A stretch of 63,721 nt of DNA, filler included, from Choristocarpus tenellus KU-1152 (taxonomy: Eukaryota > Protista > Phaeophyceae), in NCBI GenBank assembly GCA_964200185.2. It is 12 parts of 12 records of this genome, joined end to end, with 100 filler letters (N's around TTAATTAATTAA, not from the genome) between each part and the next. Parts side by side here need not be neighbours in the genome. Positions count along the whole stretch, not along the records: positions 10,219 to 27,345 come from CAXNAD020000720.1; 11 more parts are not named here. One strand, given 5' to 3'. Each line of letters begins with the position of its first letter. Positions within the stretch are counted from its first letter, which is position 1. A model generated the notes under the pieces. The model saw only the letters and a list, made by a program, of their open reading frames with translations. It ran no database searches and was not told where the DNA came from. Shown one piece after another: positions 1 through 27,654 of this stretch. A program made the translations under genes and the position numbers.

Positions 1-2328
1 CAGTGGTGTCTGCATTTCCTAATCCACTCCACCGATGGTGTCTATAGTGTACCAGCAGCACTATCTACGAACAGTTTATAGTTTTGCTAAGTCATCTGTA
101 GTAGTCTCTACCGCTCTCGTCACAATTATTCGTCCTTTTTTAAAAATGACAGAACACTGTTCCACTTGGGTACTCAACTACTTTGTAAGGTCAACAATGT
201 ACCGCTATTATGCCACATACTTCCACAGTACTTCTGAGATGAATTAGGGGTTGTCATGGCCGTATGACGATCGGGAAGGAGGGCACATGTGGATTGTATG
301 CCGCGGTGTTTATGTGTAATTTATCCCTTAAAAAGAATAGAGGGAATGGTTGACTGATGACAGTGCTGGTGTACACTGGTGAACAGAGTGGATGCAAACT
401 CCAACCATTTGGTGATAATTGACCAGTTGCCGTTGGACTGTTTAAATTTGTCCACAGATTTGACTGGAAAATTGCGTGTCTCACTGATTCCACCCAGATA
501 AATACATCCTGAATTTCCACTTCCCAGGCAACTTAGTGCTCGCCATTGTTTTGGGACTATTTTGAAGAACAGTACTTGTGTGTCCTATGCCGCAGTCCTT
601 TAGTTTAGAGTAGTCCCTCAAGTCTTTTCAATAACAGAACTCCAAAAGTGTTACAGGGGAATAGCGCGTGCATTTCTTTCTGCGTGCCAAAATGCCCGAA
701 CAGTATACATACGTAAGAATTCATGTAAGAGGAACTTTGAATTGATAGAAGTTGCAGACTAAGATTCGAAATGTATACCTAACCTTACAGAATAGATGTC
801 AATTCCAGAAAGTTGCAGAATAAAGATTTATGATTGGAGTATTTACACAGCAGTTTGCAGTCGTCATTTAACTCTTTGGCTGTAGAAAAGTTTTGAATGT
901 TAATAAAAGGCTGAGTCGTTGACCACTACTCAGTTCTTTGATCCTTACCCTCTTTTGATAAAGCGAAAAGCGAGACATTGACTGAGCTAAGCATCAACTG
1001 ACACCATACATGGTCATCATCTATGAACCCCCGCGTAGCGTCGTTTCAAGGTCGTTGGATTTGAGTTGCATATCCTGTGGAGGTGAGTTCTGGGGGGCAC
1101 GATGTAACATGGAGGTCCTACCGCCTCTCTTCAAACTGGAGAGAATACAAACCGTATTCACCTCAACACTTAGGATTCTTTGTAGCTTCCTACGCCCGCC
1201 TGGATTCTTTTCTTTTCCCACTTGGGTTTGTGATCTTCATGTGGGGTCTGCGGGGTTTTCGTCTTGGCCTCATCGTCTCTGTGGGTGTGATGACCTCTGT
1301 GGCTCCGAGGGAACCATTATCCTTCATTGTTGTACTGTTCAAACATAGGCGCTACTCAATTTTTTCTTGTTGATATGATACACAAACTACCAGCTTGTAC
1401 TGACTGTTGATTGGTGCACTGCACTGGTTGTTAGTGTTCATTTATTTATTGCGCATCCCAACACATCATCTCATCGATGACAGTAGATAGAAGTATAGCA
1501 TCAGTTGATCCATATCACACACAGGAACATCATAGCACACGTCATTCAAGTTACTTCGGAACTCGTATCAAGTGCATTCCCCTGTTACCTTGTGTTCCTT
1601 TTTTCTATTTGTTGTTGTCTGCCATCTCGGTTCTTTCCTTTTATATGCATAAGACCCCAGATGCACGGTAATTGTTGGTTATTATTTTTTATTGATTGCC
1701 ATTGTCCCCTCACTGAGTACCTCAAGCTCACTCTGAAATAGTGCTACAGGTGCCCCAGAAAGCTTACCTCCCCAGGATGTATAGCCCCAATCCACGGGCA
1801 TATAGATGCTGATGTACGTATAGGACTCGTGGTGCACAAGTCGTCACGTATGCTGGATCTCTCACTTGGATTATCGTCATTATCGTCATATAAAAAGGAA
1901 CTGGTCCACGCTGTCTTTTATCACAATCGGGGACCACAATGACCAAATAATAAATAAATAATCAAGAAGTACAAATATATCAAATCTAGAACTTCAATGT
2001 CATAATGGTGTTTATGAAACCGCCATCAAGACATACCGTCTGTGACATACCCCCCTAGCATGAAGCATAACTGCTTCAATGCGATAAACTGACGATTGGA
2101 CAAGGAAATATAATGTCTCTCCTCATCCTATCATGGACACAGCAGAAATGAAATGAATGCCACTTCCAGGTCCTACTAATTAATAGGCAGTGTTGGGGAT
2201 CCAGCGGAGGAGGAAACAGGGAGGGAAAAACCTCTTCCAACGTTTGCCCTGACAACAGATATGTTAGCGCGACACTCCCACCTCACGGCACTCACTCTGC
2301 ATTTGACTCAACGTTCAAAAGAAAAACT

Positions 2329-2708: not shown

Positions 2709-5700
2709 GCTCCGAAGCGAGACCTGGTGATGTCCTGGATAGACTACTGGGCGGATACGTACGGGCAGTTCATGCCTCACAAGACCGCAATTGTGATCTA
2801 CGCCGCGAACAAAGAGGTAGGTTTTGCCCTTGGTTGTGGAGAGGTTGGCCACACCCTGCGTTGGAGTTAGTTGCAAACCGTGTGACCCATCAGTATGTAG
2901 AAGAAGTAGATCGAAGGAGAATTTTAAGTGGTGGGTGGTTATTACTTTGACCGGTCTGAGATTATGGTTAAAAAAAAAGTGAAGCTTCATACGAAGTACT
3001 ATTTTCTTTCTTTGTGAATGTCGACACTACAATGATGATGATGATACTCTTCGTTTGCTTTTACGGAGGAAGGCACAGTAACTGTTATTTCACCGCTGTG
3101 TACACCTACTCTTGCAGCCCCGGACCCGGTCTGACCTTGGTAGCAAAAGTGTGTACTTTGTATGTCTCAAGGACTTCGCGATGATGATGATGATGATGGT
3201 AGATTCACCTCCTTTACGTTTCTGCAAACGGCGGCAAGACCTGAAGAGAATGGCGCTCGTGGCAGATTTACGAAGATCATTCTCTTTGCTCTTTCATTAC
3301 GAACGATGTAAGGTTGCTTGATCCTGTCTTCCGTGTTGTCAGTTAAGTTACTGCTCAGCCTGCCTTCGAGAGATCATGCAGCGGTGTTCTTCGAGTGTTC
3401 CTTCTCAATAATTCCTCACTTGTCCACACAAACAACATTAATTATTAGGGGCTATACAAGGACTTTTGCAAAGAGGCAATACGGGTGTATCCTGACGACA
3501 CTTCCAAGCGGGTAAGCAAGGCACACTTCATTCGATTGCTCAGAGAGGACAGGCCCAACATCAGGGTGAGGGTAGGAGACGAATTTATGAAATGTGACAT
3601 ATGTGTCACGTTAAAAGAGAAGCGGCACGGTGCGCCTGGTGTAAAACCCACGAACGACTCCACCGTCCTCGAGTCCAATGACAAGGAGCTGTCAGACCAT
3701 CGAAAAGCAGGTGTCCAGCGTTAATTTTGTGACAATCATACAGTAGCAACATGTCGCCGTCATTGCCTTCCATTGGGAACAACATCTGTTGCCTTTTGCG
3801 AATGAAGACTCCGACGCAGGTGCTTACGGCAGCAGCAGTAGCAGCCTCACTCAGCGCCAAACTGTTATTATTAGGTTCCCACACACCTTGTGTGATGGAA
3901 CTGTTGTTTCCTGGTCGTCTACAACGGGCTTTGGGAGGGACATGTCATGTTGCGGTCTTCCGGCCCCGTACATACGTACCTGCTCCTGTGCCGATAATAC
4001 TGTCTTTGCCTTGAATGCAGCAGTAAAAAATAGGAGCAAAGACAAACATTTTTTGTTACCTACACTCGATTTTTGTCACGTACCTGGTACGTGTTAACAA
4101 GTGGACATTTATTTACACCTCTAAGCAGATTTATTTGATTTATAGACGTGATGTTGCTCTCCCCCATTCCCCAGATTATCCAAGCGGATCGGCTGGTCAT
4201 CACCAACAACACCAGCAGCGCCATGCGGGCCAAAGCCGACGGCAAACCTCTCGGCTTCGTGTTCATGTCTGTAGACGCGGCGAACCAGACATCCCATGCC
4301 CTCCCAGCACTTTACCCACCTACCCACGGCGGTGACAGGTAACCACACGCACGCATAGTCCATTTGTCAACAAGTTTGCAGCCGCATGCAGAAGAGAATA
4401 GACCACCCTGTTTTATTGAACGAGTGAGTGCAAAGTCCCAAGAGATAACCGCCAAAACAGACGCACATAATTCCACTACCTATTCCGTTCATCATGATGA
4501 TGACGCACCGTAACACCTTTCTTTACACGTTTCTTTGGTTCATGTCCTTGTTATCAGGGGCTACTCCGAGTGCCAGAAGATCATGGCCGCACACGTTGAA
4601 GGCCAGTTAGCGGAGGTGCTCTTCACTCCTCAAAATCTTGGAGGAGGTACGTATTGTGGGTTGTGGCAAACAATCACATGACCGAATAGATGTTGGTTGC
4701 ACACGCACCACTTGATTTATCGTCATAGTGAGGGGACCCACCGCAGGTTAGATACCCGAGGACGAGTACATCCTTGCACGATTTTCCTACAGATACCGCA
4801 GGCCTGGTGAACAGTTGATTAAGTGATGATGCGCTGTGCTCCCCTGCCCTCGTACCCCTCAGCTTCGGAAGGGCGAGAGGAGCGTAAGAGGCAATCAAGG
4901 AGGAGGGAAACCGACAGACATCTATATCAGCCAGTTGGGTGTATGTGCTCTACATCGCAAAAACACATTACATTACCCCTCTTTTTAGCTCCAAGTAAAC
5001 AATGCGTAAGTAAGCAGAGTACTATTTGCCAACTAACGACAGACATCATCGTTCGCGCAGGTTGTAATCTTGTCTGCACAGCCACCCACCTTGCCCTCAC
5101 AAGGCCCATCGACAAGTATCACAACAGCCTCGATCATGCGGGGGGTTGCATCATCCAGCACGCGCATTGACAGGTAAGAAAGTTTCATCTTGAGACGACC
5201 TACTTGCGATCTACTCGCCGAATAGCGGCCACCAAGTAACTAACTGCGTGGTATTTAGTTTTGGTTTGTGGGTTGCAACTTGCATGTATGATGGCGGTGA
5301 TATAGAGCTTGCGCTCTAGCACTGCTGGAAACACGCCCTGTTTCTCCACAAAACGTGCAGAAACGGGCTGATATATCGGCCTCGCGCCTATCCCTCCCCT
5401 GCTCCCAACTCCCCAAACTACCCAGGTCGACAACTGCGTCTCAGAGAACAAGAACAATTTCTTTCTCGGATATGCGGGGCTGTTGGTCGCGGCGAGTGTC
5501 GTTCGTGTGGTCGAGATACATTTTATATGGTAGGGCACACGCACATCAAGATCGATCAGATCTTCTCCAGGCAATTAGGCACGCATCGTGAATGCGATAG
5601 CCACATGGTATTTTTACATGGACAGATACTGCCTTGAGGCTTGCAGTTCACGCTTGTTGCCACTCTGGAAGGTTTATGGTCATACACTGCAATGGATTGA

Positions 5701-9173: not shown

Positions 9174-9319
9174 GTGACAATGCCACAGTCTCAGAGTACC
9201 TCAGCACAAACAGGCACCTTGTGTGGGTGGTTGACGGGGATGGGAGGACAGCTCTTATCCTGGCTTGCTTGGGCGAGCATATGCCCCTTGTGGAGACCAT
9301 TGTAAAGGCTGGAGCAGAG
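9174..9319 (+). CDS. Internal exon of an ankyrin-repeat protein
   Basis: CAG|...|GT bounded exon encoding GDNATVSEYL...VDGDGRTALILACLGEHMPLVETIVKAGAE (ANK consensus D..G.TAL..A...G....V..L...GA). Confidence 0.7.
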
Positions 9320-10118: not shown

Positions 10119-10337
10119 NNNNNNNNNNNNNNNNNNNNNNNNNNNNNNNNNNNNNNNNNNNNTTAATTAATTAANNNNNNNNNNNNNNNNNNNNNNNNNN
10201 NNNNNNNNNNNNNNNNNNCCCCCCCCTCTCTGTTTACCTTTTCTCATGTAACGTAGTTATATTGTGGTGTGTTGTGTGTGTCTCTATCTGGCTCCCATTT
10301 GACCCTCAGTTTGGGACTCTTCAGACTGAAGTGAATG

Positions 10338-10607
10338 TAACAACAATAATAGTATTAGTAATAATAATAGTAGTGGTAGTAGCAATAATAGTAACAATGG
10401 TAGTATCAGTAATAATAATATCAATAACATAGTACTAGTAATAATAATACTAGCAATAATAATAAAAATAATAGTATTAGTAATAGTAATAGAAGTAGCG
10501 ATAGTAATTATAATAATAGCAAAAATAATAACATAGTATTAGTAATAATAATAATAATAAAGTAATAGTAATAGAAGCAGCGATAGTAATAAAAATAATA
10601 ATAGCAA
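10338..10607. repeat. Degenerate (AAT/AGT)n microsatellite, left half
   Basis: AAT-rich trinucleotide run with AGAAGTAGCGATAGTAAT motifs; continues in the same orientation at 26154. Confidence 0.9.
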
Positions 10608-10730
10608 TGTGGAAGTGTCAAAGGTGCCAAGCTCTCTGCTCAAAGGGCGCAATCACAATCACCGGAGTGAACTTTTCCACCTCAGAGGGTGACACCAAGT
10701 ATCAAAGATCTTACCCAAACATCTCAGAAC
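10608..10730 (-). repeat. Inverted copy of the Gypsy LTR 3' end (U5)
   Basis: Reverse complement of 26032-26153, roughly 90% identical by eye. Confidence 0.9.
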
Positions 10731-11945
10731 CCGGTCAAAGGTGCGTTTGAAAGCAAGATGGCCTGCAACTTTATGGCCATGTAGGGCGTGTAAAATTAAG
10801 CCCTGAACCTCTGTTGGGGCTACTAACTGATCACGAAACTCTCCGATTTTTCGAAGGTGACCAGGCTGATACGACCAGTAAAGTAAAAGTCTATTTTCTC
10901 GTTCTTGACTGAAACAATTTGACATGGTATAGGCCGTTTCCTTAGTGGGTAATGCCACATTACTTGGGTCTGCCAGGAATTGAAAACAAGCTCCAAACTG
11001 ATCATGCCGGGCCTTGGCTAGAATTTCCGTATCAATTACAGGGAAAACATTGATGTAGCTTGCAAAGAGCTCTGAGTCATTTGCTACCCTAGTAATTTCA
11101 CCTAGTCGATCCACAGACAATTCATAGGCAGGGTATACCTTACTTGCTTTAGAACTTGCATCCGTGGTTTTTGTACCCACATTTCGACGTACAGGGGTTA
11201 GGGGTGCTGGTTCAGATTCATGTTTACAAAATTGTTCCAGTTGAGGATGTGACACATATCTGGGATGTACTGCAGTCTGCCAGGCTTATGAAGGAAGATA
11301 AAATCAAAACCTTGTAAAGCTAAGGACTATCTAGTTAACAGATTGGACGTATCTTGCATCGTATGCAGCCACCATAAAGCTGAATAGTCACTAGTAACTG
11401 TGAAATGTTTACCCCAAATATATGGTCTCCAATATTAAATTGCCAGGATATCTGCAGGGCACTCTTTTTGTGTGGCAGAATATTTCCGTTGGGAGGGGGA
11501 AAATAAGGTACTATGGTATGCAATTATATCAAAATTGTCATCATCATTTTTATGGGCCCAAAACGCCCCTGTCCCAACATTACTGGCGTCTACATGAATA
11601 AAAAATTCCCTTGAAAAATCAGGAAAGTGCAGCACTGGAGCCCTAGATAAACGTCATTTGCATTCTTGTCAAAAGCAGTTTGCTGTGGTCGATTCCATCT
11701 AGATGAGATATCCTTGTGGTCTTTCTTTGATGGCTTTTACTGAGTTGTCATCTGTTCTTAAATTTTATTTCTGTGTATGGCGAATCAATTCAACCAACGG
11801 TTCTGTTGATGTTGCTAGGTGAGGAATATATTTCCTAACGAAGTTAGTAGAACCTAAAAAAGATTTTACACCTTTCACAGTTTGAGGAGGATGCACATCT
11901 AATATAACGGGATAATTGATAGTAATGTCTTTGTCAGGTGACTAC
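10731..11945 (-). pseudogene. Gypsy pol relic: RT thumb/connection, RNase H, integrase zinc finger
   Basis: PPQTVKGVKSFLGSTNFVRKYIP; FFIHVDASNVGTGA...IIAYHS...QRKYSATQKEC; LHALHGHKVAGHLAFKRTFDRV; frameshifted. Confidence 0.9.
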
Positions 11946-13013
11946 AAAAATATTGTCTGGGTTGGTTATTTCAGTACCACAAGGAGAATCCTAGAAAAGG
12001 AATGTTGTAGCAAGTAACATAGCAAGTAACACAGATTGAGTGGCAAGTTATTAGTGGTCAGTGATGAGTGAAAGGTTTATCACCCCCCTTCTTGAACTAT
12101 GTATCTCTCTCCAACTTTCTACCTCCTATAACATAACTGGGAAGGAATTAATCTACACACATCAATGTCAAGACTTGGGATTCTACACATTCCTTAACAT
12201 GCTAGGTAGCATACTTTAAAGTGTGCTGATATTTCAAGTTAGCTAGTAGTAGAGGGGTCAGTCAGAGTTCCGATGGCGTCTGCTGTCAGTAAGTGAACAT
12301 GGAGGTTGAAGATGTTGGTGTGGAAGTACAGGGCATCGATGATGAGGAGGATCTAGCGACAAGGGATATCGCGATCCCAATATAGACTGTGGGAGTGGAC
12401 CTGCAGCACCTCATCCCACTTCCCTCAAAAAGTTTGGCATACAACGGTGACGATGATGGTGAGGGATTTCCTCATACAAGAAGGGATTTCTAACTTGTGC
12501 TGCGATGGGCGGATGGATGGATGGATGCATTATTCACTCAAGATTATGAAGCAATCTGAGTTTTATGGGCAGAAGAATTCTATTTGGTTGGGGGCACAGG
12601 TCAAGGGGACAGGAAAGAAATAAAAATGAGCAAGGAGGGAATGAAGAATTAAATACTGAGTGGTTGAGAGGGAGGAGAGAAGTTAAAAAAAAAATGGTTG
12701 GCAGGCCGAGGCAGGAGTGGAGAAGGAATGGACAGTATTGAATTGAAGAGGAAACCTGAGGCTGGGGTGGCAGGACGAGGAAGGCTAGATCAAGACGACC
12801 CCCGAGCAAGCTTTCCCAACCAACCCGCCCTGTCGCTTGCTCACGACCGACTTGGATCTCAGGGTGGGAGGGGGGGGTCAAGTTCAGGTGGGGTAGGTGT
12901 CTTCTAGCTCAAAGGCGCGGTATGAAGGGGATGATGAAGGGGGGTTCTTGGATGATTGTGGAGTGGGGTTGAGCGGGGTTGAATAGGGTTGAAAGGGTTA
13001 GGGTGGTAGAGAC

Positions 13014-13165
13014 CGGAAATCAGTGGTGAAAGGAGTTGCACTGGTTGGTCATTGGATGCGGGAGGTGACTGGAAATCAGGGGCGAAGGGGGTTCACCCTG
13101 GTTGGTCATCCGATGTAGGGGGTGACTAGAAACTAGTGGCGAAGGGGTTGCACTGGTTGGTCACA
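13014..13165. repeat. ~57-bp tandem repeat x2.7
   Basis: GGAAATCAGTGGTGAAAGGAGTTGCACTGGTTGGTCA-like unit three times. Confidence 0.8.
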
Positions 13166-14237
13166 AGGGTTGTCAGAATGCGGGGAGAAAAGGGAATAGG
13201 GAGGAATGCAAACACAGAATAAAATTTAAAAAAAAATAATCCAGAATTTGTGAGCAAAACAAAATCAGGGTTGGCCCAGAAGGAGGAGGTACATGGAGGA
13301 GGACACACCAAGAGAAGTTTGTGAAGCCAGGATGGCGTTGGCTGGATTGGTTATGAGTGTAGGAGGACTTGCATTCAACGTTGTTCGTAACCACAACAGG
13401 CCCCGCCTGAAGCTTTCCAGGCACTGAGAGACCGTTTCGAAGGAGATGAAATTACACAAATAGCATCTAGCAATTGGGGGAGGGATCCTGCGCGTATCAC
13501 CCAAGAGATGGAAAAAAGCTGAAGATGTTGCGGAGTCTTGGTACCAAACCTGACGAGGAAGAGAGCAGCTGACACTTTTTGAATATCAGTTATTCGTAAC
13601 TGTTTTGCCGCAGAATATATTGTCGAGATACGTCAGATTTCCGATGTGGTTCGAACGACCAGATTGCAACTACGGAAGAGAGTCTGCGGATCATATCGGA
13701 TGAACAAGAGGTTGGAGGACGGTGCTATTGGGAACCACAACGGAGCGCTTACTTATGTCTACTGGAAGCTCGACATTCAATCATGGATCGCATTCTGCAT
13801 CATCGGCTGGACACCATGGTAAACATGCTGTAAAATGGTTCAAGTGCGGTGGACCGCATTGCATGTCTGTTTGTCCATCTGTTTCTTCCCCACCTGTAGC
13901 AGGAAAATTTTCCGGTACCTGCTATATTTGTAGCAGATCGGGACACAAAGCTTGAAATTGTCCTGGGCGTGGAGTGGCTATGGCAGCAGCTAAACAAGTC
14001 GTTGATGGTGGTGCAGCGATTACGCTGAGGAAGGGGCGTGGGCAAGGGAAGGCGAATGGTGGAAATAATGGACCGCCAAAGAAAAAACTTGCAGGTTTTC
14101 TCTCGAAGGTGTAGGATGAGAACACTGAACAGTGGGATGATGTATGGTATTTTGATAGTGAGCGTTCTGCCCATATGATCAACAACCCCATTGCTTTGAT
14201 GGACCAACGACCTGTTAGTGGAAAGTCTGTGACTGTT

Positions 14238-14428
14238 GGTGAAAGTATCTTAGAGGGTACAAGTTTTTCCCTACTTGTCCATTTGGGGCTTGGCTTCCCA
14301 CGGGTCTTACTACAACATTTTCCTACTCCAAAATGTATATGAGTAGGTGAAGTATGTATGTTATGAAAAGGTTGTGTCCTGAACATGGATATTGACACTT
14401 CCTAACAAACACAATAACCGAAATTATA
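14238..14428 (+). mobile_element. MITE family A, 3'-truncated, inserted in the Copia-1 protease region
   Basis: GTGAAAGTATCTTAGAGGGTAC...GATATTGACACTTCCTAACAAACAC. Confidence 0.88.
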
Positions 14429-17249
14429 TAGAGGACAGAAACTTCGAGCTACCATGGTCGGAAACTTACCATTACGTTGTATACGGAATGAGAAGGTTTA
14501 TGATTTTTTTCTGCGCAATGAGTTGTTGGTTCCAGAGTTAAAGTTCAATCTTTTCTCAATGGTTCAAGCTGGATGTCATCAGGTGGAGAAATTTATTGGC
14601 GGGGGGAAAATTCTTTGAAGTTGATCTCATCAACAGGTGGACCTCCCCTTATTTTTTCATCAACCCGTGGAAAGAATTTTCATTTGCTCACATTACAGGC
14701 TAGGAGGAGAATGCCTACAAAACCTACACCACCACGTAGACCAACTCCCCCTTACCCACCTCATGAGACTGAAGTGGCATTTGCGCTTGGAGGAACAGCA
14801 GCAATCCACCTCGCCCAGGAGGGGGGGTTAGGGGAGTCGACTTCGCGCGAGATGAGACTGGAGGTATCGACCTTAGCCCACGGTGGGGCTAGAGATATTG
14901 ATCTCGCCCAAGGGAGGAGTGGTGGGGATATCAATCGAGAAGGATTGATGATCGAGGCTACTTTACTACTACTATATCAGTGGAGGATGCTGTAGAAATG
15001 AGTAAACTTTCCCGCGAGGGGGTTGAAGTTAATGCCGTTGTCCCAGAGGGGATTATTGGGGGGGAGGACCTATCTCAAAGATGGTTCCACCAGTGTTTGA
15101 TCCAGGCGGGTCAACTAGTCTGAATGCAACATCAGAGGTGGGTGTTGAGGAACTGGGTGGAGGACTGATGAGGGCACGGAGTGCAAGAATGGGGACATCG
15201 AGGGGGTGTTGGATCAACACAAGATTCAGCATGAGTACATATTTCCTGGTTCCCCCCAATTGAATGGGAAAGTGAAACGCGCAATTGCACCGATAGCGGA
15301 GAAGGGGCTGGTCATGATGCACGCGGCTGGATTGGGTGATCGGTTGGGTTTGTGGGCAGAGGCGCCTAACATAGCTACCACACTAACAAACCTTTGCCCC
15401 ACGTCTGCTAACCCCCACTGGAAACCACCATATGAAATGTTTTATGGTGTTCCAACCCACCCTCATTTGTTGCCTCTTTGGGATTCCAAGGGTTTCACGA
15501 GAGTGGACCAACGGATGCATAAGTTAGCAGCCGAACCTTGTCTGATGAAGGTATGTTCTTCCAATCCCCCTTCTGATTCTTTGCTGGTTCTTACAAATTC
15601 AGGACAAATAGTCAACAGGCATGACTATGTTTGGGAATCACATTCTGTTGCTGGGATTAACAACGCTGGGGATGGAATCTTGGGGGAGAAGCAAGAGGAC
15701 TTTGGGGGGAGGATTGGGGAGTTGATGCTGGAAAAACTTTCTTTTGAATCAGAAGAAAAGTTCGAAGAGAAAAAGACTTCAAAAGGGGTGTCTTCAGAAA
15801 AAGTGGGTTTAGATTCGGAACTTAAAAGCGGGGAAGGTGGAATAGATGTGAAGAACACTATGGAGAATGGAAGTACGAATGGGATGCTGAACACTGGTGC
15901 TGGTGGTATGGATCCACCTACATCACAGCAGGGGAGTGGTGGAAAGTTGTTACTGCGACTAGCGGACCATTACCGCAATGGACATAAAGACCATAACCCC
16001 CCATCCGAACTCGGTGAACCATTGCAACGGACATAAAGGTATGAGCGAAGACTGGCTGGTCTACTTGTGGGTGGGGAAGATGAAGCCCTCCCACCAGAAC
16101 CTACGACCATGAGAGCAGCGACTGAGACTGAGGGGTGGCCTTTGTGTAAAGCTGCTATCGATGAAGTGGATGGTCTGGATAGCAGGGGAGTGTGGATTCA
16201 AGTACCTCGCCCCACTGATGGTCACAAGGTACTCGGAAAAAAGATGTGTTTACTAGGAAGATGGATGCTAAAGGAGAAGTGGAACGGTACAAGGTCAGGT
16301 TGGTTGTCCAGGGTTTCAGGCAGAGAAAGGAGGAAGACTACTTCGAGTCATTTTCGCCAACACCTATACATGCTTCTCTTCCCATGGTACTTGAACTAAC
16401 AGCAAAGATGAATTACGTGTTGATCCGCAGTGATGGGAAGAAGGTTTTCACACAGGCTGACTTGGAGGACACCATATATGTGGAACTTCCAGAAGGAAAG
16501 GCGAAGTTTGATGGAGAGGTGGGTCTACTGAAGAAGTCGCTGCATGGGATAGTCCAGGCTTCTTGGAACTGGAATTTTCTGCTAGGGGAAGCTTTGGCGG
16601 AACTGGGATTGGAACAATCTGAAGTATATCCATGTCTATTCCGAATGATTGTGGAGGTAAGGTTGTGATGATCATGATTGTTCATGTGAATGATATGTTA
16701 ATGGCTGAGGAGCCAGGGGCTGGTTATGCTCTGCGTATCATAGAGGGACAAGCGTTAAAGTTTGAAGAACAAACTGGAACAAGCGTTCCCGTGCCAGGGG
16801 GAAGGGGTATCTTTTTTATTGTGTGTACTGTGTAATAAATTCAGATGTTAATACTGAAATTGAAAAATGAGGTGGTGTATTTTCAGCCTGGTAAACATTT
16901 CTTGGGGGGGAACAGATGGGAAGGGGAACAATTTTGTGTTTTGATGCGATGCATTGATCACTGTCTTTAAACGACACCTCCTCTCTATCCCAATCTAGCA
17001 TTGCCCCAAATGCCGACATTTGAGGCATATAAGAAATGTCACCCACACCCCAAGAGAGGTTGCGAGGAAACAGAAAGAGCAGATGCAACAGCTGTTTGAT
17101 GTCCTACTTGTGGCCACTTTTGGTGTCCTGAACTTAAATGAGACAAGTGTTGGATCTTACGTGCTATCTCTACCACATCTGAGTCTGCTCTCAACAAATC
17201 CCCAGTTTTTCTTCTTATCCCTACGGCTTCCGGGAAAACAGATTCTGCA

Positions 17250-18130
17250 AGGCACCTCTATTTCTGTCCGGTCTCAGTTCGCTTTTCGCCCGGTTCAGGG
17301 TGGTCTTGGCCATCATTCCAACCTGGTTGAATCGGAAGTACCGTGTCCGCTAGGCGTACAGTAAAATGCAGACAAATAACGACCGTGCGACTTATCGGTA
17401 TTTCGGCTAATGACCAGAGCGATCCCTCCAGGACGGGCATTCCTCCCTTTCCGTCAGGGGTGATAATTGTTGCCCCCAGGGTTGGTCCAAAAATCCTCAG
17501 ACGAATGTCCTCGCCTTGACCTCACATTACAACCTTCGAAGTTGCAAACTGGGCGGGGCTCCGAAGGGGGTTGAGGTGAACGGTCATGTAGATTTTTTAA
17601 AGATTTTTCAGGCGTGTGGGTGCGTCTCATCGATTTCAATTGGTGAATTTCGGCGTTCGCCCGGTCCAGATCGTCTGCACGGCCCTTTGCAACAGTCAAC
17701 AACGGACGAATACCAGATAATTGAAAGTCTGTTGGGTGTAAATTTTCCAGGTTTTCAACGGATGTGCTGGAGGTCACAAAATATGAGGAAACGATCCCCT
17801 ATCCCGACCCGACATGGCAGGCGCTTGGCCAACCACGGCATCAACTCTAGTGCAGCGAAGTTCTCGTAACATTGAGGATATCAACACAAAGCTCCCAGAA
17901 TGGCGGGTAACACACCGACATTGAATGCACAGTATCCGAGTCTGTATGTAAGTAGGGCAATCAGGGTGGCTGGGGTAAGGTCAACAGGGACGAGGTCACA
18001 TCTGTTGTGCGGGTCGGGTCCACTCTCAACTCACGTATAAAAGAATCAATTGACTCAATTACCCTCCTAGCAAACGCCCAAACATCCTCCTTCGGTTCTT
18101 GACGAATATCAATCATGTTTCAGAAGGTCC
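17250..18130 (-). pseudogene. Gypsy gag relic (left arm)
   Basis: Zinc-knuckle-like PVCNFEGCNVRSRRGHSSEDFW; inverted copy of 18145-18550. Confidence 0.6.
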
Positions 18131-18144
18131 TGTCTAAAAGATTC

Positions 18145-18550
18145 GGTAATTTGAGTCAATTGATTCATTTATACGTGAGTTGAGAGTGGACCCGGCCCGC
18201 ACAACAGATGTGACCTCGTCCCCGTTGACCTTACCCCAGCCGCCCTGATTTCCCTGCTTATGGACATACTCAGATACTGCGCATTCAATGTCAGTGTATT
18301 TATTACCTGCTATTCTAAGAGTTTTGCGTTCGAACCCTCAGCGATACGAGAATTTCGCAGCACTAGTTGATGCGGCGGTTGGCCAAGTGTCCGCCATGTC
18401 AATTCGCCAATGGAAATTGAAGAGACACACCCACACGCCTGACAAATCTCCGCGACCATTCACGTCAACCCTTTCCAGGCCCCATGATCCCCACCCAGTT
18501 TGCAACTTCAAAGTTGGTAATGCGAGGTCGAGGGATGGACATTCGTTTGG
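18145..18550 (+). pseudogene. Gypsy gag relic (right arm, inverted duplicate)
   Basis: Reverse complement of ~17500-18063 with an internal ~160-bp deletion; PVCNFKVGNARSRDGHS. Confidence 0.7.
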
Positions 18551-18559
18551 TGTCTGCAT

Positions 18560-19665
18560 TGACTGCATGCCTAGTGGACTCTGCACTTCCAACTCAACCA
18601 ACTTCGAATGATGACCGCAAAATATATGTCATCCGCTGTACACCACCTTACAAGATTCACAATCTTGGTTGGAATAGCAAATAAGCAAGAAAAAACCGTG
18701 GCTAAACCTCTCGTGGATCGTATTCCATCTTTGGTCCTCCTGAAACAATCCACTCTGACCAAGGCAAAGAATTTGATAATCAACTCCTGGCTGAGTTGCA
18801 TTAAGTGTATGGATATCATAAAACCAAGATAATGGCATATCGACTACAAGGCAATAGTATATGTGAACGCATTCATCCTACAATGCATGGTATGCTGACC
18901 ATGTATTCAAATATGGACCAATCTGACTTGGCCTCATTATTGCCCTTTGTACAGCTACCTCATAATACAGCCTATAATACCACTGTTCAAGAAACGCCAT
19001 TTTCTCTCATGTTTGGGAGGCGCCGAATATTACCAATTGATCTTATTTTGGGGGTCCCTGAGGCCACCCCCATAACTACACAAGAATACAACATGAAAAC
19101 AGTGGAGAATTTACAACTAGCCTATGAATTAGCACGGCGTAATATTGGTGAGATGGCTCTAAGAAACGAATCAAAGAAAGTGAACCATAAACTCTCACTA
19201 AACGGACCTGGACATGAAGTGTAGCTTCACAAACCACATACTTCAGCAGATGCACCAAACCCCAAGTTATTGTCCCCAAGGAGAGGACATTATGAAGTGA
19301 AGGCACGTATAACACCTGTTGTACATCGTGTAAAACGCTTGGAAGATCAAAATGAAGTGGCAGTTCATCTGGCCAGACTTAAACCTTACAAAGAAGGAAT
19401 AGCCAGAGTACCTGACATTGATGCCCTTAATTCACTCTTTTTAGGCTGGATTTTACCCAAACCGAATCTTGATCAGGGGTCAAATACGCAGTCAACTATT
19501 GGATCTTACAATGAGGAGGGTATTGTTGATCATAAACGTGGTGTAGCAAGAAACACTACCGCAATTATTGTACCGGCTTCACTTTCAGGGATATTCACCG
19601 GCCAGTGATGTATGGCTCAAACCCACTGAAATACCTGAATGTGCAGAGATAATCGCAGCCTTTGA
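18560..19665 (+). pseudogene. Gypsy integrase core plus C-terminal chromodomain
   Basis: VHHLTRF...KTVA; YRLQGNSICERIH...LLPFVQL.HNT...TPFSLMFGR; VHLARLKPY; EGIVDHKR...LYRLHFQGYSPASDVWL. Confidence 0.9.
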
Positions 19666-20559
19666 CCAAGCGACTTGTCATAGTCAAAAGACACTGCCAC
19701 TACAACAGCCAAGGAACTTGTAGTACCACCAACCGGACGTCTACCTAATAGCAACCAAGCCTCCTCTAATATTTTTGACACCCCTCCTTGTGGACCGGAA
19801 AGAGCGATGAATGCCTCTATACTAGTGGGTTGCCGGCCTGGTGAGTTGCCACCAGATTCCACAGATAGAGAAGACGTTTCTTTTTCACTACCAAGATGGC
19901 AGAAGCGGCGCCGAAAGATTCTCGAAGACAATACCTAGGCTCAGACCGGGTGGTATTTTCAGAGCTGATCTAGTTAGCGACTTGAGTCTTGCGAAGTAGA
20001 AAGACTGCTCTCATCCGGAAACAAATACAGGTTGATTCTATCCGTGAGAAGCATGCATACTTTTTCAAAATATTATTTATCTCAGGTATAACATTTTACT
20101 TCATTATTTCTTTTAAAGGACTGTGCGCATATAATAAAAATTTAACAGTTCAACTTACTGGTTACCCAAGCACCTTGGAGACAAGTTGTTGAAGAAGAGG
20201 TGATAATAAGGGATGATGAGTCTTCCTGAGCAATGTAGGCAGATAGTCTATATGGTTTATAGGTGTTTAGTGACCACTACTAGACAATATGAATGTTGAC
20301 TAAGTGGAAGAAGTGTCATTGACTTGTTTTTGTGCTTAGAGTAATAGGATCAAATCTCAGATGATCGTTTTGTTATTACCTGACATAAATGGACTGATGG
20401 ACGATTACTGACATAGTACTAGCTATATAGGATAAGCTTTGTGTGGTATGGATGTGTTTGTTAGCGGAGCTTGCTTTGACCTTGGACTGGCCCTTCTTCC
20501 TATTGTCTTCCTGAAAATGGGCCTTCAGCATCAGGAAGGTTCCCTTCTCCTCTCATCAT

Positions 20560-23500
20560 AGGCATCAGGAACAGCATGCCACAAGTATTTGCACAGCTGT
20601 CAACATCCCCAGAACTAAAATATGATCAGTTAAAGAACACCATCATGTCTTCTGCTTCTTATGTGACCACGGAGGTAACAGGGGAAATAACTAGGACCTC
20701 GGGGGCTATGACACTGCATACAGGGGCAGAGTCGCAAACAGGGAAACTGGAGTCTGGGAGCGGCTTCAGTTCAGATCAATGTACGTTCTGCTTAGGTTCT
20801 AATCACAAGTGGCGAAAATATCGCTCGTACTTGAATGGACAACCAACCCCCTGCTAAGCGTCCCCAGGGGATGGCGAAACCAAAATTCCCACCACCAAAC
20901 AAAAGAAAGAGCAGTGGTGGCAGAGGTGGAGGCAAGGCAAAAGCTTTCCTGACCATGAATGTGTATGTAGGGGAGGATGTATATGACAGACTGGTTGAAG
21001 CAGCACACTTATCATCAACTCAAAATATGACCAAGACAGACGCCATTAGCCTCCTATGTGACTCGGGAGCCAATGTACATCTTACCCCAAGACTGCAGGA
21101 CCTAACTGCAGCAACAGAGATCACTCGCACCTGCACCTTTGGTAATAAAGGTACACTAGAAGCACAGGCAACAGGCAAGATGGTGTTGCAAGCCACTAAT
21201 GAGAAGGGCAAGCCGACCAAGATTGTGCTCCAGGATGTGCTCTGGGTACCTGGTCTACCATGCAGACTTCTTAGCACAGGTAGCCTGCGGCACAAGGGAG
21301 ATGAATTTGTGGACTCTGGGTTTAGAAGAAGCTACATTCAACCCAACAAAGGGGCAGCCAAGATCCATTTGGAGGAGAAGGGAGCCTTCCTGATGCTGAA
21401 GGCCTATTTCCAGGCAGACAATAAGAAGAAGGGCCAGCCCAAGGTCAATGCAAGCTACGCCAATAAATAACAGCGTCTCTCCCTCTTCGACTGTCATAAA
21501 ATAATGGGTCACCTCAACCCCTTTGCCATAAAGCACCTTAAAAACGAGGACTCCTGGATATCACAGATGCTACGGTCGCCTCCGAGCTTCACTGCAAGGT
21601 ATGCAAGGAGTGTAAGTCCGAGGCACTCAGTTACGCTCAGGGAGGCCGCAGTCCCAAGACAGTGGGGAAGGTGGTGTACACAGATATGGAGGGACCTTTT
21701 AACCCGGACGTGACAGGAATGAATATTTTCAGGTGTTCGTGGACGAGGCTAGCAGGGAAAAGCGTGTGATAGGACTGCGTACCAAGGACGCCGCTACAGC
21801 GGCCACTGCTGCCTACATAGATGAAATGGCTTGGGACGGGGTGGTAGTGAGATGCATCAGTGGAGATGGTGCTGGCGAGTTCGGGAGGAGGATAAGGTTC
21901 CAGCGCTTGCTAACAGAGCGGGGCGTAAAATGGTGTAAGAGCCCACTAACACACCCCAGAGCAATGGAATTGCTGAGAGGGCAATCAAACAGATTATGCA
22001 ATCTGCGTGCAGCCAGTTAATTCAGGCTGGACTGGGGGAGGACTTCTGTTTTTTTGCAGTGGTAGACGCCACATTCAAGACCACTGCAATGCCGCACAAG
22101 TACTTGGGAGGTGAGGCACCATGTGAGGACCTGACCAACATACCCTTCAACTACAAGCGGCTTCCGAGTATTTGGGACAGAGTGTTTTGTACACCAAACC
22201 AAGCAACAGCGCGGCGCTAATGCTAAGTTCCACCCATATGCAAAGCGGGGGATCATTGTTGGACATGACAGAGCGTCATTATGCTGGCACATCTGGATCC
22301 CACAGGAGGGTAAGCTGGTGACCTCAGCACAAGTGACTTTCCAGTCTGAAGCTAAACTACTGGAGCTAGTGGGAGAGTCAGAGCTGGACATACTGGAGGA
22401 GTCAGAGTTCGATGACGACATGGACATGGGTATGAAAAATGAAAAAGAGGGTTCCAAAACAGGGAGCAAGACTGGGGGTGAGAGCCAAAACATTGGGCGT
22501 GGGGCTCAAGATGCAAAGCGTCCAGCATCCCTTCAGTCAAGAAATTTCTCCCAGGATTGGACAATCCCAGCGCATGGATAGGGCTGCACAGATGGAAGCT
22601 AAGCGTCTGACCCCACACTCTGGACTTCGGAGATCTGCCAGGCTGGAGCAACGCCAGCGGGTAGCCTACACATCTCAACTATGTGATCAGGAAGAAGATG
22701 AAGAAACAGACATAAACCACTTTGTGTCAACCCTCATGCAGCAGAACAACAAAGAAGTGTACTGCTTTATGGGTCTCATGGGGGAAGTAACAGCAGGTCC
22801 AGATGAGCCATCTACAACCAAGGCGGCCTTGAGTGGGCCAGATGGAGAGCAGTGGCAAGAGGCAATGGAGAAGGAAATGTCAGGGTTATGGCAAAAGGGG
22901 ACTTTTAGTGACAAGGCCCTCCCCCAAGGTAGGAAAGCAATCTAGACATGATTTGTTTTCAAGATGAAGCGCTCCGCAGACGGGTCAGTGGAAAGATATA
23001 AGGCTAGACTTGTGGCCCGTGGGTTCACCCAAAATGCAGGAGTGGACTTCTTTGAAACCTTCAGCCTGGTGGTGGGATATGACACACTATGATGAATCGT
23101 GTCAGTCGCAGCGTACAGAGGTTGGAGCATAGACGCCCTGGACTTTACACAGGCCTACCTCAACGCTGATCTGCAGGAGGACGTCTGGTTGGAGCTTCCT
23201 AATGGCTGCACAGTCAAGGCCGAGAAGGCAATCTATGGGCTGAAGCAGTCAGCAATGGAATGGTACCATAAACTACGCATTACCATTATATCAGAAGGAT
23301 GGACAAGCAGCCAACATGATGAGTGCCTCTACTTCAAGAAGAGTGAAGACGGACGCATTGCCATTCTCACGACCTATGTGGACGACACTTTCACCACTGG
23401 GGACTTCACAGAAGAAATCCAGAGGATGAGGGCATCACTGCTGGAAAAGTATGAGGGGCGGGACCTAGGTACGCCAGACAAGCTGATTGGGGTGGGCATC

Positions 23501-24349
23501 ACTGTGAGTGAAGATGGCATCACCTTGGACCAACAAATGCACGCTAAAAACATTGTTATGGCTGGGATGGGCACTATAGAAGTACGAAAGACATCAGCAC
23601 CACTGGACGCCGGCATGGACCTCTCTGCTAAACAAAATCATGAGGAACTAGATCCCATCATATACCCCTATGCCAGTATTCTTAGGAAACTTATGTTCTT
23701 AGCAGTCATGACTCGACCAGATCTGGCTAACAGTGTTCGTGAACTGGGGCGTAGAGCAGCATCTCCATGCATGCGACACTGGCGCGGACTACAGCACGTT
23801 CTCCGCTACGTAGCAGGGACATTGGATGTCTGCATTCATTATGATCGAGGGGACAAAGATATGAACGAGGGGGACAAAGAACTCCTGGTGGGTTATAGAG
23901 ATTCTGACTGGGGCACAGACTCCCAAACACGCAGGAGTGTCACAGGCTACTTGCTACTGTTCAACAAGTCGTCGATTGCCTGGCGCTCCAAACTTCAAGG
24001 TGCTGTCACCCTCTCCAGCTCGGAGGCAGAGTGGACGGCAATGGCATACGGCATGCACCACTGCATTTTCCTTCAAGGCATTCTGGGGGAGATTGGCATA
24101 TTACAGGATCAGACTCCCTGGTTCTGTGACAATCGTGGTGCTATCCAGGCGAGCAGAATCCCAGGTTACAATGGGAGGACAAGACGCGTAGACATGAAGC
24201 TGAAGTGCACTAGGGAATATGTGGACCAAGGCCTGTTTCATGTAGAATATGTTCAAACATCAAAACAACTAGATGACATTTTGACAAAGCCTTTGCGTAA
24301 CTGTCTTACTTCTAGTTTTGTGCATTCTGTGCTTTCGTGTCGAGATTGA
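20560..24349 (+). pseudogene. Copia-2 gag-pol (frameshifted)
   Basis: CTFCLGSNH knuckle; LCDSGANVHL protease; H..MGHLN; integrase; RT TTYVDDT; RNase H VGYRDSDWG...LSSSEAEW. Confidence 0.93.
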
Positions 24350-24387
24350 ACTTTAGTCAGCAACTTTGCTGCACGCTCATGGGGGAG

Positions 24388-24801
24388 TGTGCAATATAGG
24401 CTGATAGTCTGTATGGTTTATAGGTGTTTAGTGACCACTACTAGGTAACAGGGATGTCGACTAAGCGGAAGAAGTGTCTGGACTCGTTTTCGTGGGCTTA
24501 AAGTAATGGGTTCGAATCTCAGATGATCAATATCTTATTACTTGATATAAATGGACTGATGGACGATTACTGACATAGTATTAGCTACACAGGATAAGTG
24601 ACATAGTACGATGTAATGGCAGGACACTTGTTGAAGTGTCAGCTGATGTGTCAGCTGATATATGCAATAAACAATAAGATAATAAGAGAGAGAGCACCCC
24701 CCACCACCACCGAGGGCTGTGCTCACTCCGCTGATAAATCCATACCACACGAAGCAAAATACTCTACTTGAGTAGCTCTCTTTTGCAAACTCTTTTGCAA
24801 A
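24388..24801 (+). repeat. Copia-2 3' LTR
   Basis: Starts TG directly after the PPT, ends at the TSD, and is similar to 20227-20436. Confidence 0.88.
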
Positions 24802-25207
24802 CTTCCAACCACCCTTGACACTATTCCTACAACACTCCCCAGTAGATGACTTGATGTACCAAAGCTGTGGTGATACTGAGCTTCATCCACTCAGACCCCG
24901 GGAGACACTTAGGAGACAGGCTGGTCCACGCCATTTTTCTCACTGCAATTTACACCCGTTAACACAAATTTCACTTGGACTAAGGTGGTATTTAGAGCTA
25001 TCTATTAGACGACTTCAGGATCGTGGGGTAGAAAGATTGCTCTTATCCGGGGACATTAACATAGAGTGATTCCACCTGTGTGAAGCATTATGCATATATT
25101 TTTCTGTTCAAATATTATTTACCATGGGTATAATATATTACTTCCTTTAAGAAATGCGCATATAACAAACATTTGAAGTCCATCTTTTTCTGGTCTTCCA
25201 AGCACCT

Positions 25208-25439
25208 GATTGAAAATATCTTAGAGGGTAAGATTTTTGTCCTGTTTGTCCATTTGGGGCTTGACTTCACACAGGTTATTTATGACAGTAGGTAAAACGT
25301 GTACGTTATGAAAAGGTGCGTCCGAAAAAGGATATTGAAACTTCCTAATAAGCACAAAAGCAAAAATTACATCAAAATTCTAACATAGGGTTTTGGTCCC
25401 CAAACGGACGCGGCTCTTCCCTCTAAGATAATTTGACTA
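25208..25439 (+). mobile_element. MITE family A with 4-bp TSD ACCT
   Basis: ACCT at 25204-25207 and 25440-25443. The empty site CCAAGCACCTTGGA is seen in the paralogous unit at ~20167. Confidence 0.93.
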
Positions 25440-25739
25440 ACCTTGGAAGCAAGTTGTTGAACAAGACATGATAGTAAGGGGTGATAAGTTTCTAATTGCC
25501 CTTGACGCTATCCCCACAACACTCCCCAATAGATGATGTACCAAAACACTTGGACTAGCGTGCGACCTAGGGCTGATCACCACTAGTGCTCCACCTTTCC
25601 TATTTCTTTACCCCCGAGTTGATTCAACCAGGGTGTCTTCATTTTTTTTTCCTCCCAAAGATGGACCTGTCCGACATGAGGTGCTGGCCAGCCACTTTTA
25701 TGTCCATGTTGGACAGTATCCACACCGGGGCGGGGGTAA

Positions 25740-26153
25740 TGTCAGGGACATGTTCCTCTCTTGTGATCTCCGACACACACACTTGTACAGAAGACGCGCG
25801 ATCATATAAATTTGTGCACGCCCACCACCTAATTTGCACTCACCCATACCGACCAGTCCAATAAACCAACCACATCCGTAAGATTCGGATTTGACCAAAC
25901 AGTCAAAATGTACTGTCAGAACGAAGATCCATTCCGATTCTGACTGATCCACTTCTCTGTGACGTTGCTCGGTCATTCTGGAACATCTGTTGTGCCTTGA
26001 AGTTTTTGTTCTGTTCTGGATTTCCTCAACAGTTCTGAGATGTTGAGTCAAGACCTTTGAAGCTCGGTCTCACCCTCTGAGGTGGAAGAGTTCACTCCGG
26101 TGATTGTGATTACCCCCTTGAGCAGAGAACTTGGCACCTTTGACACTTCCACA
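25740..26153 (+). repeat. Gypsy 3' LTR (TG...CA, 414 bp)
   Basis: Preceded by PPT-like GGGGCGGGGG; TGTCAGGG...CTTCCACA. Confidence 0.75.
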
Positions 26154-26243
26154 ACAATAGCAAAAATAGTACTAGAAGTAGCGATAGTAATAATAATTAT
26201 AGCAATAACAATAACAACATAGTAATAGTAATAATAATAATTA
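26154..26243. repeat. (AAT)n microsatellite, right half
   Basis: Same AGAAGTAGCGATAGTAAT motif and orientation as 10338-10607. Confidence 0.85.
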
Positions 26244-27654
26244 TGACGACAATATTTTCCCTTCAACACTCCCCACAGCCTAACACACTTGAATAAGCGC
26301 AACTTCAGGTTTGGAGGGACATCTCCCAAAGGAACGCTTCTCACGTGAAGATGCAAACATTAGATGGGTATTCCTAGCTCAATATACGACAGCAGCATGT
26401 TCCAGATTAGCACTACTGTTGTGCATCGGGATGGAATCAAAATCACACAAAGTTGGAGGTTACTCCTTGGCTGTTGCTATACAGGCAGGGTCAATTGATT
26501 TGGGAAGGAGAGAGAGACATCTGGGTGGGAACTAGACGGGAAAGTTACCAACTCTACCGACTATACACATTATGATGGTATGACGTTTTGTCACTGACTG
26601 TAGGAGGTATAATATACCCTCTAAGTAATATCAACAATCTTCCAAAAATATATATATATTTCAACCACAAAGCGTACAAGGCCTTTCTTGTACACTGATC
26701 AGAAGCTCCTGTCTACTCTGGCTCAACTCACAACATGGAAAACGTCAACACCAACACACACAAAATCGCTTTCCACTAAACCCCCAAAGTGTGTTTGCCC
26801 AAGAAAGCACTTGATACAAAACTTCCACAAAATGTGAAACATTAAGCACCACATCTGCACTTCAAATACAGTACAATGCAGGGCAACAAAATGCTTCAGT
26901 TCTAATAACACATTCACCATCACAAGTAGAGACACGGTACATCTCACTTACCCACCCTACTTCAATACTCATTATCACCACAGTCCAACAGATTAACTCC
27001 ACCTCAATAGCCCCCCACCCCACCTGTACCACTCCCCCATCGACTTTCCTCTTGTGGGCAGTACCTGTTCAGCACGCACATAACATGGAAACCCATAGAC
27101 ATGGCAAGTGTCTAACTTCTTCTCACCTGGCATGTACCCGCGTAATGGCAGCCAAGTGACCAGAGCCTGAGATAGAAGAATGGAGATGGGACTGCCCCCC
27201 AAGAACATCAAACCAACAGTAAATGCACACACACACACCCACAAACAAAAACACACGAACAAACAAGAGAGAATCCAACAGTGGTTTTAAGCAGGGGCCG
27301 GGGTAGGGGCACAGTCAGGGGGTTGGGTTAAGGGGAGGGAGGGGGNNNNNNNNNNNNNNNNNNNNNNNNNNNNNNNNNNNNNNNNNNNNTTAATTAATTA
27401 ANNNNNNNNNNNNNNNNNNNNNNNNNNNNNNNNNNNNNNNNNNNNCAGCAGGATGGGTGCAGAATGGAGCGGTACAGTCTAGGGATGTTATAACAAGGGG
27501 AGAATACGGGCACGAGGAGATGAGCATTTGTAACAGAGAGTATGATGAGTTGGAAGTGAAGAGAAACACAGCCCCACCAAAGGTAACAACTCTGTGAAGC
27601 TTACATGTGAGCTTTCAAGTTGTATAGAACCACACGCCAGGGCAAAGTACGCAC

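Follow-up and report, generated by a model that had tools for sequence, protein, structure and literature searches.

The window analysed here is a stretch of 63,721 nucleotides, filler included, from the genome of Choristocarpus tenellus KU-1152 (Phaeophyceae; assembly GCA_964200185.2, 164 Mb in 27,310 contigs, with abundant Gypsy and Copia elements). Its positions 10219–27345 represent the entire contig CAXNAD020000720.1 (C720; 17,127 bp). Within this contig, positions 10608–26153 constitute an eroded head-to-head (5′-to-5′) inverted dimer of one Ty3/Gypsy chromovirus-like lineage, which occupies a single target in an AAT array. Both outer ends are U5 (unique 5′) ends of the long terminal repeat (LTR), and we tentatively propose, with a probability of roughly 0.4, that the locus goes back to one integration of a DNA molecule that already was an inverted dimer with two U5 ends. 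The locus may point the way to a novel type of integration product.

Architecture of the inverted dimer

The anatomy of the locus was compared with 20 other contigs carrying the family. In coordinates of the element reference, the order of segments is flank, reverse complement of the last 123 bp of the LTR, reverse complement of the element between the integrase zinc finger and position 937, direct sequence from position 1024 into the putative gag, integrase core to LTR end, and flank. The two outer ends (10608–10730 and 26153–26032) form a terminal inverted repeat of 123 bp with 88.6% identity (E 2.5e-39), and both coincide with the exact LTR terminus of the family (...CACTTCCACA), as found in 20 other copies. 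Since no further LTR homology is present anywhere in the piece, a 5′ LTR is missing. Thus, two features proposed in an initial annotation of the sequence, the inverted LTR ends of about 123 bp and the lack of a direct 5′ LTR, are borne out. A normal insertion displays one U3 (unique 3′) and one U5 end and two direct LTRs; here both ends are U5 and inverted.

At the centre, positions 17498–18058 and 18151–18549 form an inverted repeat that folds as a stem of about 255 bp (−230.6 kcal/mol, z = −31.5). The left arm extends to 18148, which corresponds to reference position 937, and the right arm begins at 18145, which corresponds to 1024; the four bases GGTA (18145–18148) belong to both arms. The central hairpin of the initial annotation is therefore real as an inverted repeat, but its putative 81-bp spacer represents 87 further bases of the left arm, and its assignment to gag finds no support in Pfam, the putative gag open reading frame (ORF) being without Pfam match both in the window and in contig C9358. 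With an overlap of 4 bp and an offset of 87 nt, the join displays the inverted orientation, the microhomology and the short asymmetric spacer that characterize fold-backs. No trace of a 5′ LTR, a primer binding site (PBS) or array sequence is present at this position. Instead of abutting LTR termini with a target motif between them, as expected at the inner join of a double insertion, a gag-to-gag join is observed; however, a later deletion could have taken the inner LTRs of such a double insertion.

The two arms complement each other. Measured on contig C587, the left arm stops at 9176, within the integrase zinc finger, and the right arm resumes at 8989, in the integrase core, so that 187 bp are missing from both. 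Only about 470 bp of gag and the 123 bp of the LTR are still duplicated. In the left arm, the inverted LTR end is connected to the zinc-finger region via a 3-bp overlap (AAC, 10728–10730), with weak added similarity across 7–15 bp more in some copies, and positions 10728–11906 are colinear with 7–10 other copies at 84–89% identity. In the right arm, the join 18616|18617 is blunt, and eleven copies all begin their match exactly at 18617. None of the three internal joins (left, central and 18616|18617) was found elsewhere in the genome.

Pfam matches in the left arm comprise RT_RNaseH_2 (11438–11653, E 1.8e-18) and Integrase_H2C2 (10662–11285, E 0.003). On the minus strand the former lies upstream of the latter, which gives the pol order reverse transcriptase (RT) – RNase H – integrase. 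The initial annotation had ascribed RT, RNase H and the zinc finger of integrase to this arm. The matches to the last two are genuine, but about 1.1 kb of the protease (PR) and RT region is missing and a foreign block of 4.9 kb stands in its place. For the right arm, the initial annotation listed integrase core, chromodomain, polypurine tract and LTR. The purine tract and a complete LTR of 414 bp are present, but neither the integrase core nor the chromodomain gives a significant Pfam match in the decayed frames of the window. Both are visible only in the better-kept copy of C9358 (rve, E 2e-11; Chromo, E 1.2e-4, at 22.3 bits below the Pfam cut-off of 25.1). In other family copies RVT_1, H2C2, rve and Integrase_p58_C/SH3_Tf2-1 occur in that order, and Chromo is present in 47–94% of the members of the nearest Atlas clusters.

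The start of the 414-bp LTR was set by the 5′ and solo LTRs of other copies, which begin at the same point, after the purine tract. Its boundaries are identical in C587, C4215, C2879 and C2130, with TG...CA termini and the adjoining polypurine tract. The 3′ untranslated region (UTR) of the family contains tandem repeats of about 180–450 bp, the number of which varies by copy (19949–20226 and 24802–25207 in the window; C1475, 7962–9326; C4215, 6590–8663). Due to these variable repeats the LTR first appeared to be about 1.1 kb long. Positions 18617–20226, 24802–25207 and 25440–26153 are contiguous in other copies, for example in C10255 (1674–4448), which identifies 20227–24801 as an insertion.

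Both flanks belong to an AAT-rich array and run in the same direction. A 77-bp unit of the right flank (26165–26241) recurs in the left flank (10482–10558) with 86% identity in direct orientation, in agreement with the earlier reading that the flank itself was not inverted. The adjoining stretches 10219–10345 and 26240–27345 are single-copy in the genome, in which neither an empty-site contig nor a second-haplotype contig was found. Judged from solo LTRs, the target site duplication (TSD) of the family is 4 bp long (GATT/GATT in C2879, AAAT/AGAT in C2130). The 4-mers flanking the dimer (left GCAA, right ACAA) match at three of four positions, including the rare C, with one mismatch as in C2130. 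They had been described as a weak TSD-like match, a description which holds and to which the correct length for the family can now be added.

Of the 15.5 kb between the two termini, about 9.7 kb is foreign sequence, made up of a Copia element, two elements resembling miniature inverted-repeat transposable elements (MITE-like) and a Copia fragment. The locus is without 5′ LTR, PBS or intact ORF today, no function is evident and it is dead.

Divergence of the arms and integrity of the contig

Divergence between the arms is 10.7% for the LTR end and 15.1%, 18.4% and 21.6% for three gag segments, which amounts to 93 of 589 sites (15.8%) when pooled. Transitions outnumber transversions (62 versus 31), and neither a pattern like that of repeat-induced point mutation (RIP) nor any other strong mutational bias was seen when the arms were compared. 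The Gypsy sequence is older than the nested Copia element, whose two LTRs (20227–20436 and 24388–24598), alike at the time of insertion, are now 87.1% identical (p = 0.129 ± 0.023). The arm difference can therefore mostly or wholly represent decay since formation, and the arms were probably similar or identical when the dimer arose, even though the gag values may allow for an initial difference of a few percent. Private substitutions amount to 4.8% and 4.5% in the two arms, similar loads being expected if the arms are of equal age. The arm loads exceed, by a factor of about 1.5–1.9, the loads of copies with 5.5% divergence between their own two LTRs.

In gag the arms are 83.3% alike, compared with 71–77% to C9358 and C4215, and informative sites group the arms together by 15:6:3, with these two contigs as the only outside copies. 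In the 135 bp adjoining the centre the arms are about 91% identical by manual count, and 36 other scored copies reach 86% at most. On the basis of these comparisons, the two arms are of one lineage. Relative to two outside copies, they are more similar to one another in gag; the 89% identity of the LTR end lies within the range of unrelated copies.

Read-derived contigs of sample X1 cover 17280–18249 with 0 differences, spanning the central join, 18229–18724, spanning 18616|18617, and 16659–17000; their depth is 11–17, as in other unique stretches, and those of 17280–18249 and 18229–18724 show 0 to 3 differences. Sample X2 yielded read-derived contigs for 16659–17000 and 18484–18646, so that the 16765/16766 join is spanned in two samples. 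At least parts of the locus are present in samples S2 and S3 as well. Misassembly, which had been named as a reason to discard the structure, is thus contradicted for the central, 18616/18617 and 16765/16766 joins by independently built read contigs. Moreover, joins with overlaps of 0–4 bp are not producible by a k-mer graph. A technical fold-back read or an assembler palindrome was also considered and rejected, since the arms are about 16% divergent and differ in content.

Origin of the inverted dimer

The exact LTR termini at both ends indicate that integrase acted at both ends. In the proposed scheme, a dimer would have been formed before integration by either of two routes. Nascent minus-sense DNA may have folded back on itself via the 4-bp GGTA overlap, or two 5′-truncated complementary DNAs (cDNAs) from one particle may have been joined head-to-head by microhomology. 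Integrase would then have inserted this molecule with its two U5 ends in one concerted event, creating a 4-bp duplication that is now GCAA/ACAA. Subsequently, the long inverted repeat would have been unstable, and two deletions with microhomology or blunt ends would each have removed one copy of a duplicated stretch, leaving complementary arms; the second of them presumably ended 187 bp past the repeat boundary, a step that a double insertion would share. Finally, one Copia element, two MITE-like elements and a further block would have been inserted. Such a route would directly explain the symmetric centre, the arms of one lineage and the TSD-like match, and the position of both flanks in one array, direct and single-copy, is likewise counted in its favour. 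The earlier idea of an inverted-dimer cDNA is hence consistent with the exact termini, the 3/4 TSD, the 4-bp microhomology with its 87-nt offset and the divergence data. However, on the present data it is inseparable from a double insertion.

Some variants of this scheme were rejected. The 123-bp LTR end does not correspond to minus-strand strong-stop DNA (R-U5), because the positions of TATAAA (about 25806) and AATAAA (about 25860) place the transcript start about 300 bp from the LTR end. A single cycle of reverse transcription, in which the right arm was self-copied from the left, is contradicted by the integrase core, 3′ UTR and U3 of the right arm, all of which the left arm lacks. In an autointegration product, an internal site would adjoin an LTR terminus in inverted orientation, but here the connection lies 123 bp inside the LTR and in the same orientation.

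A double insertion may likewise account for the locus, and we regard it as a tentative alternative whose chances stay short of even. Sibling cDNAs would have integrated in opposite orientation into the same or a neighbouring 4-bp target, and a hairpin-driven, near-symmetric central deletion would have taken about 1.3–1.4 kb per arm (both 5′ LTRs, PBS and 5′ UTR), followed by later trimming. Central deletions are known to revise palindromes, and fold-back and hairpin processing are well described. Each step is a documented process, and in Drosophila melanogaster an inverted LTR-retrotransposon tandem, the Rover pair, has been attributed to double insertion (McGurk & Barbash 2018, PMC5932611). 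Like the present locus, the Rover pair consists of two copies of one family inverted at one target. However, the inner join of the Rover pair brings LTR termini together on either side of the target motif, whereas here the inner LTRs and about 0.9–1.0 kb more are absent and the arms meet in putative gag at a 4-bp overlap. Hits at the same site also predict matching outer 4-mers, similar private loads and the lack of shared derived sites in the LTR end fit sibling molecules, a few percent of initial gag difference fits two molecules better than a self-copy, and in a contig that is a dense nest of transposable elements repeated hits are unsurprising. On the other hand, the endpoints of the central deletion would have to correspond to within 87 bp in the two arms, across about 1.3 kb in each, both insertions would have to come from one lineage, although family copies differ by 18–30% in this region, and either an identical 4-bp target or a chance 3/4 match is needed. 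In addition, the assembly contains no intact inverted LTR–LTR abutment, head-to-head or tail-to-tail, compared with 157 exact LTR-end 14-mers genome-wide, and C720 is the sole contig with an inverted LTR-end pair among the 100 of these 157 matches that were listed. The two opposite insertions with loss of 5′ ends suggested by the initial annotation thus fit nearly as well as a pre-formed dimer, provided that they were siblings at the same target and suffered a symmetric central deletion.

The other explanations are much less probable. Two unrelated insertions of the family, made at different times and places in the AAT tract and followed by random deletions, are improbable. LTR ends of the family number at least 157, its flanks are AT-rich, the copy in C11189 also sits in AAT/AGT-like sequence, and the 89% identity of the LTR ends would be normal between unrelated copies. 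However, three coincidences would be required (breakpoints 87 bp apart, arms complementary within 187 bp, flanks matching 3/4 at TSD length), the arms are closer in gag to each other than to C9358 and C4215, and their private loads are equal. We consider an assembly chimera, a short-read contig joining different loci through repeats, very unlikely. The assembly is fragmented, the runs containing the locus are short-read data in the form of contigs, the stretches 18.7–20.2 kb and 15.8–16.4 kb are high-copy, and 11906/11907 and the outer joins rest on the assembly, the read contigs covering the inner joins. Against a chimera stand the single-copy depth of the X1 contigs across the stretches listed above and the coverage in X2, the join overlaps of 0–4 bp, a rare minisatellite unit common to both flanks, and clean TSDs on the nested Copia and the MITE-like insert. 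Hardly any chance is left to a chromosomal rearrangement of one normal element, either by inversion or by replication fold-back after a break in gag. Its attraction is that inverted 5′ and direct 3′ parts which complement each other with a loss of 187 bp resemble a simple inversion breakpoint or the pattern of L1 twin priming, and that the centre carries a fold-back signature. However, a single element cannot give an exact U5 terminus against the left flank, and it is on the basis of the two exact termini that a rearrangement of this kind is excluded. A chromosomal fold-back would have inverted the flank and is excluded by a right flank that is direct and unique, and simple inversion schemes drawn on paper place the inverted LTR end beside the integrase core and not beside the flank.

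The locus can be compared with several other known systems. In yeast, fold-back inversions, which are hairpin-primed inverted duplications, reportedly arise at DNA breaks. The inverted join, microhomology of a few bases and a spacer that is short and asymmetric (87 nt here) are common to them and the locus. However, chromosomal fold-backs duplicate the flank in inverted orientation, whereas at the locus the duplicated part extends precisely to the LTR termini, between direct flanks; any fold-back would thus have taken place on free cDNA and not on the chromosome. Head-to-head Ty1 pairs at the fragile site FS2 of yeast chromosome III form a natural unstable inverted repeat. They consist of two full elements with a spacer, in contrast to the truncated, complementary and decayed pair described here. 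In L1 twin priming, one insertion is said to give rise to an inverted 5′ segment beside a direct 3′ segment, with a small loss at the breakpoint and a TSD. The complementary inverted and direct segments and the small loss are likewise found at the locus, but L1 uses target-primed reverse transcription, whereas LTR elements integrate finished cDNA and the locus duplicates 123 bp of LTR and about 470 bp of gag in both arms. Foldback or terminal inverted repeat (TIR)-bounded DNA transposons resemble the locus, where the termini are inverted over 123 bp at 89% identity and the flanks show a short direct match. Unlike them, it shows no transposase, second copy or sign of mobilisation, and its termini are those of a retrotransposon LTR. 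The internal joins are unique, which is at odds with the several copies of the bounded unit expected of such a transposon. In consequence, the proposal that the locus behaves like a TIR-bounded element is unsupported, no other inverted pair being present among the 100 LTR ends listed.

Two more contigs with inverted joins in the same region were found when the first 1,030 bp that follow the 5′ LTR end in C9358 served as query. Contig C8239 (35–2531) contains the reverse complement of reference positions 1057..669 followed by 596 onwards, and adjoins a deleted copy in which position 605 is connected with the final 36 bp of an LTR. In C26848 (807–2548), positions 1..831 are followed 10 bp later by the reverse complement of 862..1, which corresponds to the opposite polarity. 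These two joins in the 5′ region may mark a fold-back hot spot and, as far as sequence matches can tell, are counted in favour of a pre-formed dimer; they could also be chromosomal fold-backs. Elsewhere along the element, no inverted joins were found in about 5 kb across 20–45 copies. It is conceivable, albeit with more doubt than confidence, that inverted-dimer cDNAs arise in this family from time to time, whether through fold-back or through head-to-head joining, with a hot spot about 0.6–1.0 kb downstream of the 5′ LTR, and that these are integrated via two identical ends. Positions 10608–26153 would then be one such event and C8239 and C26848 others, the latter of the U3-U3 type.

Several observations weigh against a pre-formed dimer. 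To our knowledge, an integrated U5-U5 inverted-dimer cDNA of an LTR retrotransposon is undocumented, which gives the reading a low prior, and two extra deletions are required. The flanking 4-mers match imperfectly as a TSD, and the surrounding sequence is of low complexity, with an [AG]CAA at intervals of about 45 bp by manual count. The 123-bp LTR end is devoid of shared derived sites, with 9 and 4 private changes in the two arms, and C8239 and C26102, both with 84% identity to the right arm in parts of gag, are as close to it there as the left arm. The gag divergence of 15–22% somewhat exceeds the prediction from private loads and the Copia clock, so that a difference of a few percent may have existed between the arms initially; this counters a pure self-copy but not two joined cDNAs. 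Long-range continuity of the 17-kb contig rests on short-read assembly. The hot spot, finally, rests on match coordinates only, and the queries favoured the 5′ region.

If a dimer was indeed integrated as such, LTR retrotransposons would directly create long palindromes and integrase would accept two U5 ends in vivo. If the family makes such dimers repeatedly, this would be an LTR-retrotransposon counterpart of L1 twin priming, seeding palindromes in the genome. Palindromes constitute fragile sites, and hairpin RNA potentially arising from them can start silencing of the family. A role of the locus as a source of hairpin RNA or as a mobile TIR-bounded element is speculation, and none of the RNA runs contains the locus. 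If a double insertion took place, the locus would be a well-preserved example of a genome disarming a 15-kb palindrome by a near-symmetric central deletion and subsequent deletions that each remove one duplicate. Irrespective of the origin, it provides a datable case with the nested Copia as a clock, and the family offers three candidate joins.

Nested insertions and further features

The coordinates of all features are given in Table 1. The 5′ LTR of the nested Copia element matches its 3′ LTR across only 210 bp. Near its 5′ end, a 96-bp inverted repeat with 90% identity (20457–20552 and 21372–21467) suggests an internal rearrangement.

Table 1. Features of the inverted dimer and its flanks, in window positions
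Feature	Position	Strand	Remarks
Left flank, degenerate AAT/TAATAG array	10345..10607	none	TRF periods 3 and 6; final 4 bases GCAA
LTR U5 end, last 123 bp, inverted	10608..10730	-	outermost base coincides with the exact LTR terminus
Left arm pol: C-terminal RT, RNase H, first half of integrase H2C2 zinc finger	10728..11906	-	Pfam and colinearity
Foreign block	11907..16765	.	4.9 kb in place of about 1.1 kb of missing Gypsy PR/RT
Unclassified repeat	within 11907..16765		57-bp tandem (13011-13163, 2.7 copies)
MITE-like element	14239..14430		inside foreign block
Copia fragment	within 11907..16765	+	RVT_2 at 16219-16665; inside foreign block
Left arm 5′ internal region, putative gag/PR	16766..18148	-	reaches reference position 937 of C9358; no Pfam match
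Right arm, putative gag fragment	18145..18616	+	starts at reference position 1024; small internal deletions
Right arm: integrase core, integrase C-terminus, chromodomain region, start of repeat-rich 3′ UTR	18617..20226	+	from about 20 aa into rve
Nested Ty1/Copia	20227..24801	+	Pfam Pol_BBD, rve, SH3_retrovirus, RVT_2; perfect 5-bp TSD CTTCC
Gypsy 3′ UTR, continuing	24802..25207	+	colinear with C10255 3326-3731 and others
MITE-like insert, 232 bp	25208..25439	.	imperfect terminal inverted repeats of about 20 bp; 4-bp TSD ACCT
Gypsy 3′ UTR ending in polypurine tract next to LTR	25440..25739	+	
Complete 3′ LTR, 414 bp	25740..26153	+	TGTCAGG...TTCCACA; TATAAA about 25806, AATAAA about 25860
Right flank, AAT-rich array, direct relative to left flank	26154..26245	none	first 4 bases ACAA; then unique sequence

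Within the foreign block, the unclassified repeat (12200–13700) displays a strong positive GC skew of up to 0.42 and is 78% similar to stretches of C2879 and C11189; no Pfam match was obtained on its frames. Copies similar to the MITE-like element, about 190–230 bp long, occur in at least five contigs (C827, C3776, C5785, C11573 and C1878), some of them within other Gypsy copies.

At the position expected for gag, C9358 carries an open frame of 287 aa (878–1738), for which no Pfam match was obtained. The fold-back joins of the Gypsy family fall within or just before the N-terminal part of this frame. In C11434, two LTR-end 14-mers (4413–4426 and 4898–4911) lie 485 bp apart in the same orientation and may represent tandem solo LTRs or an LTR–LTR recombinant.

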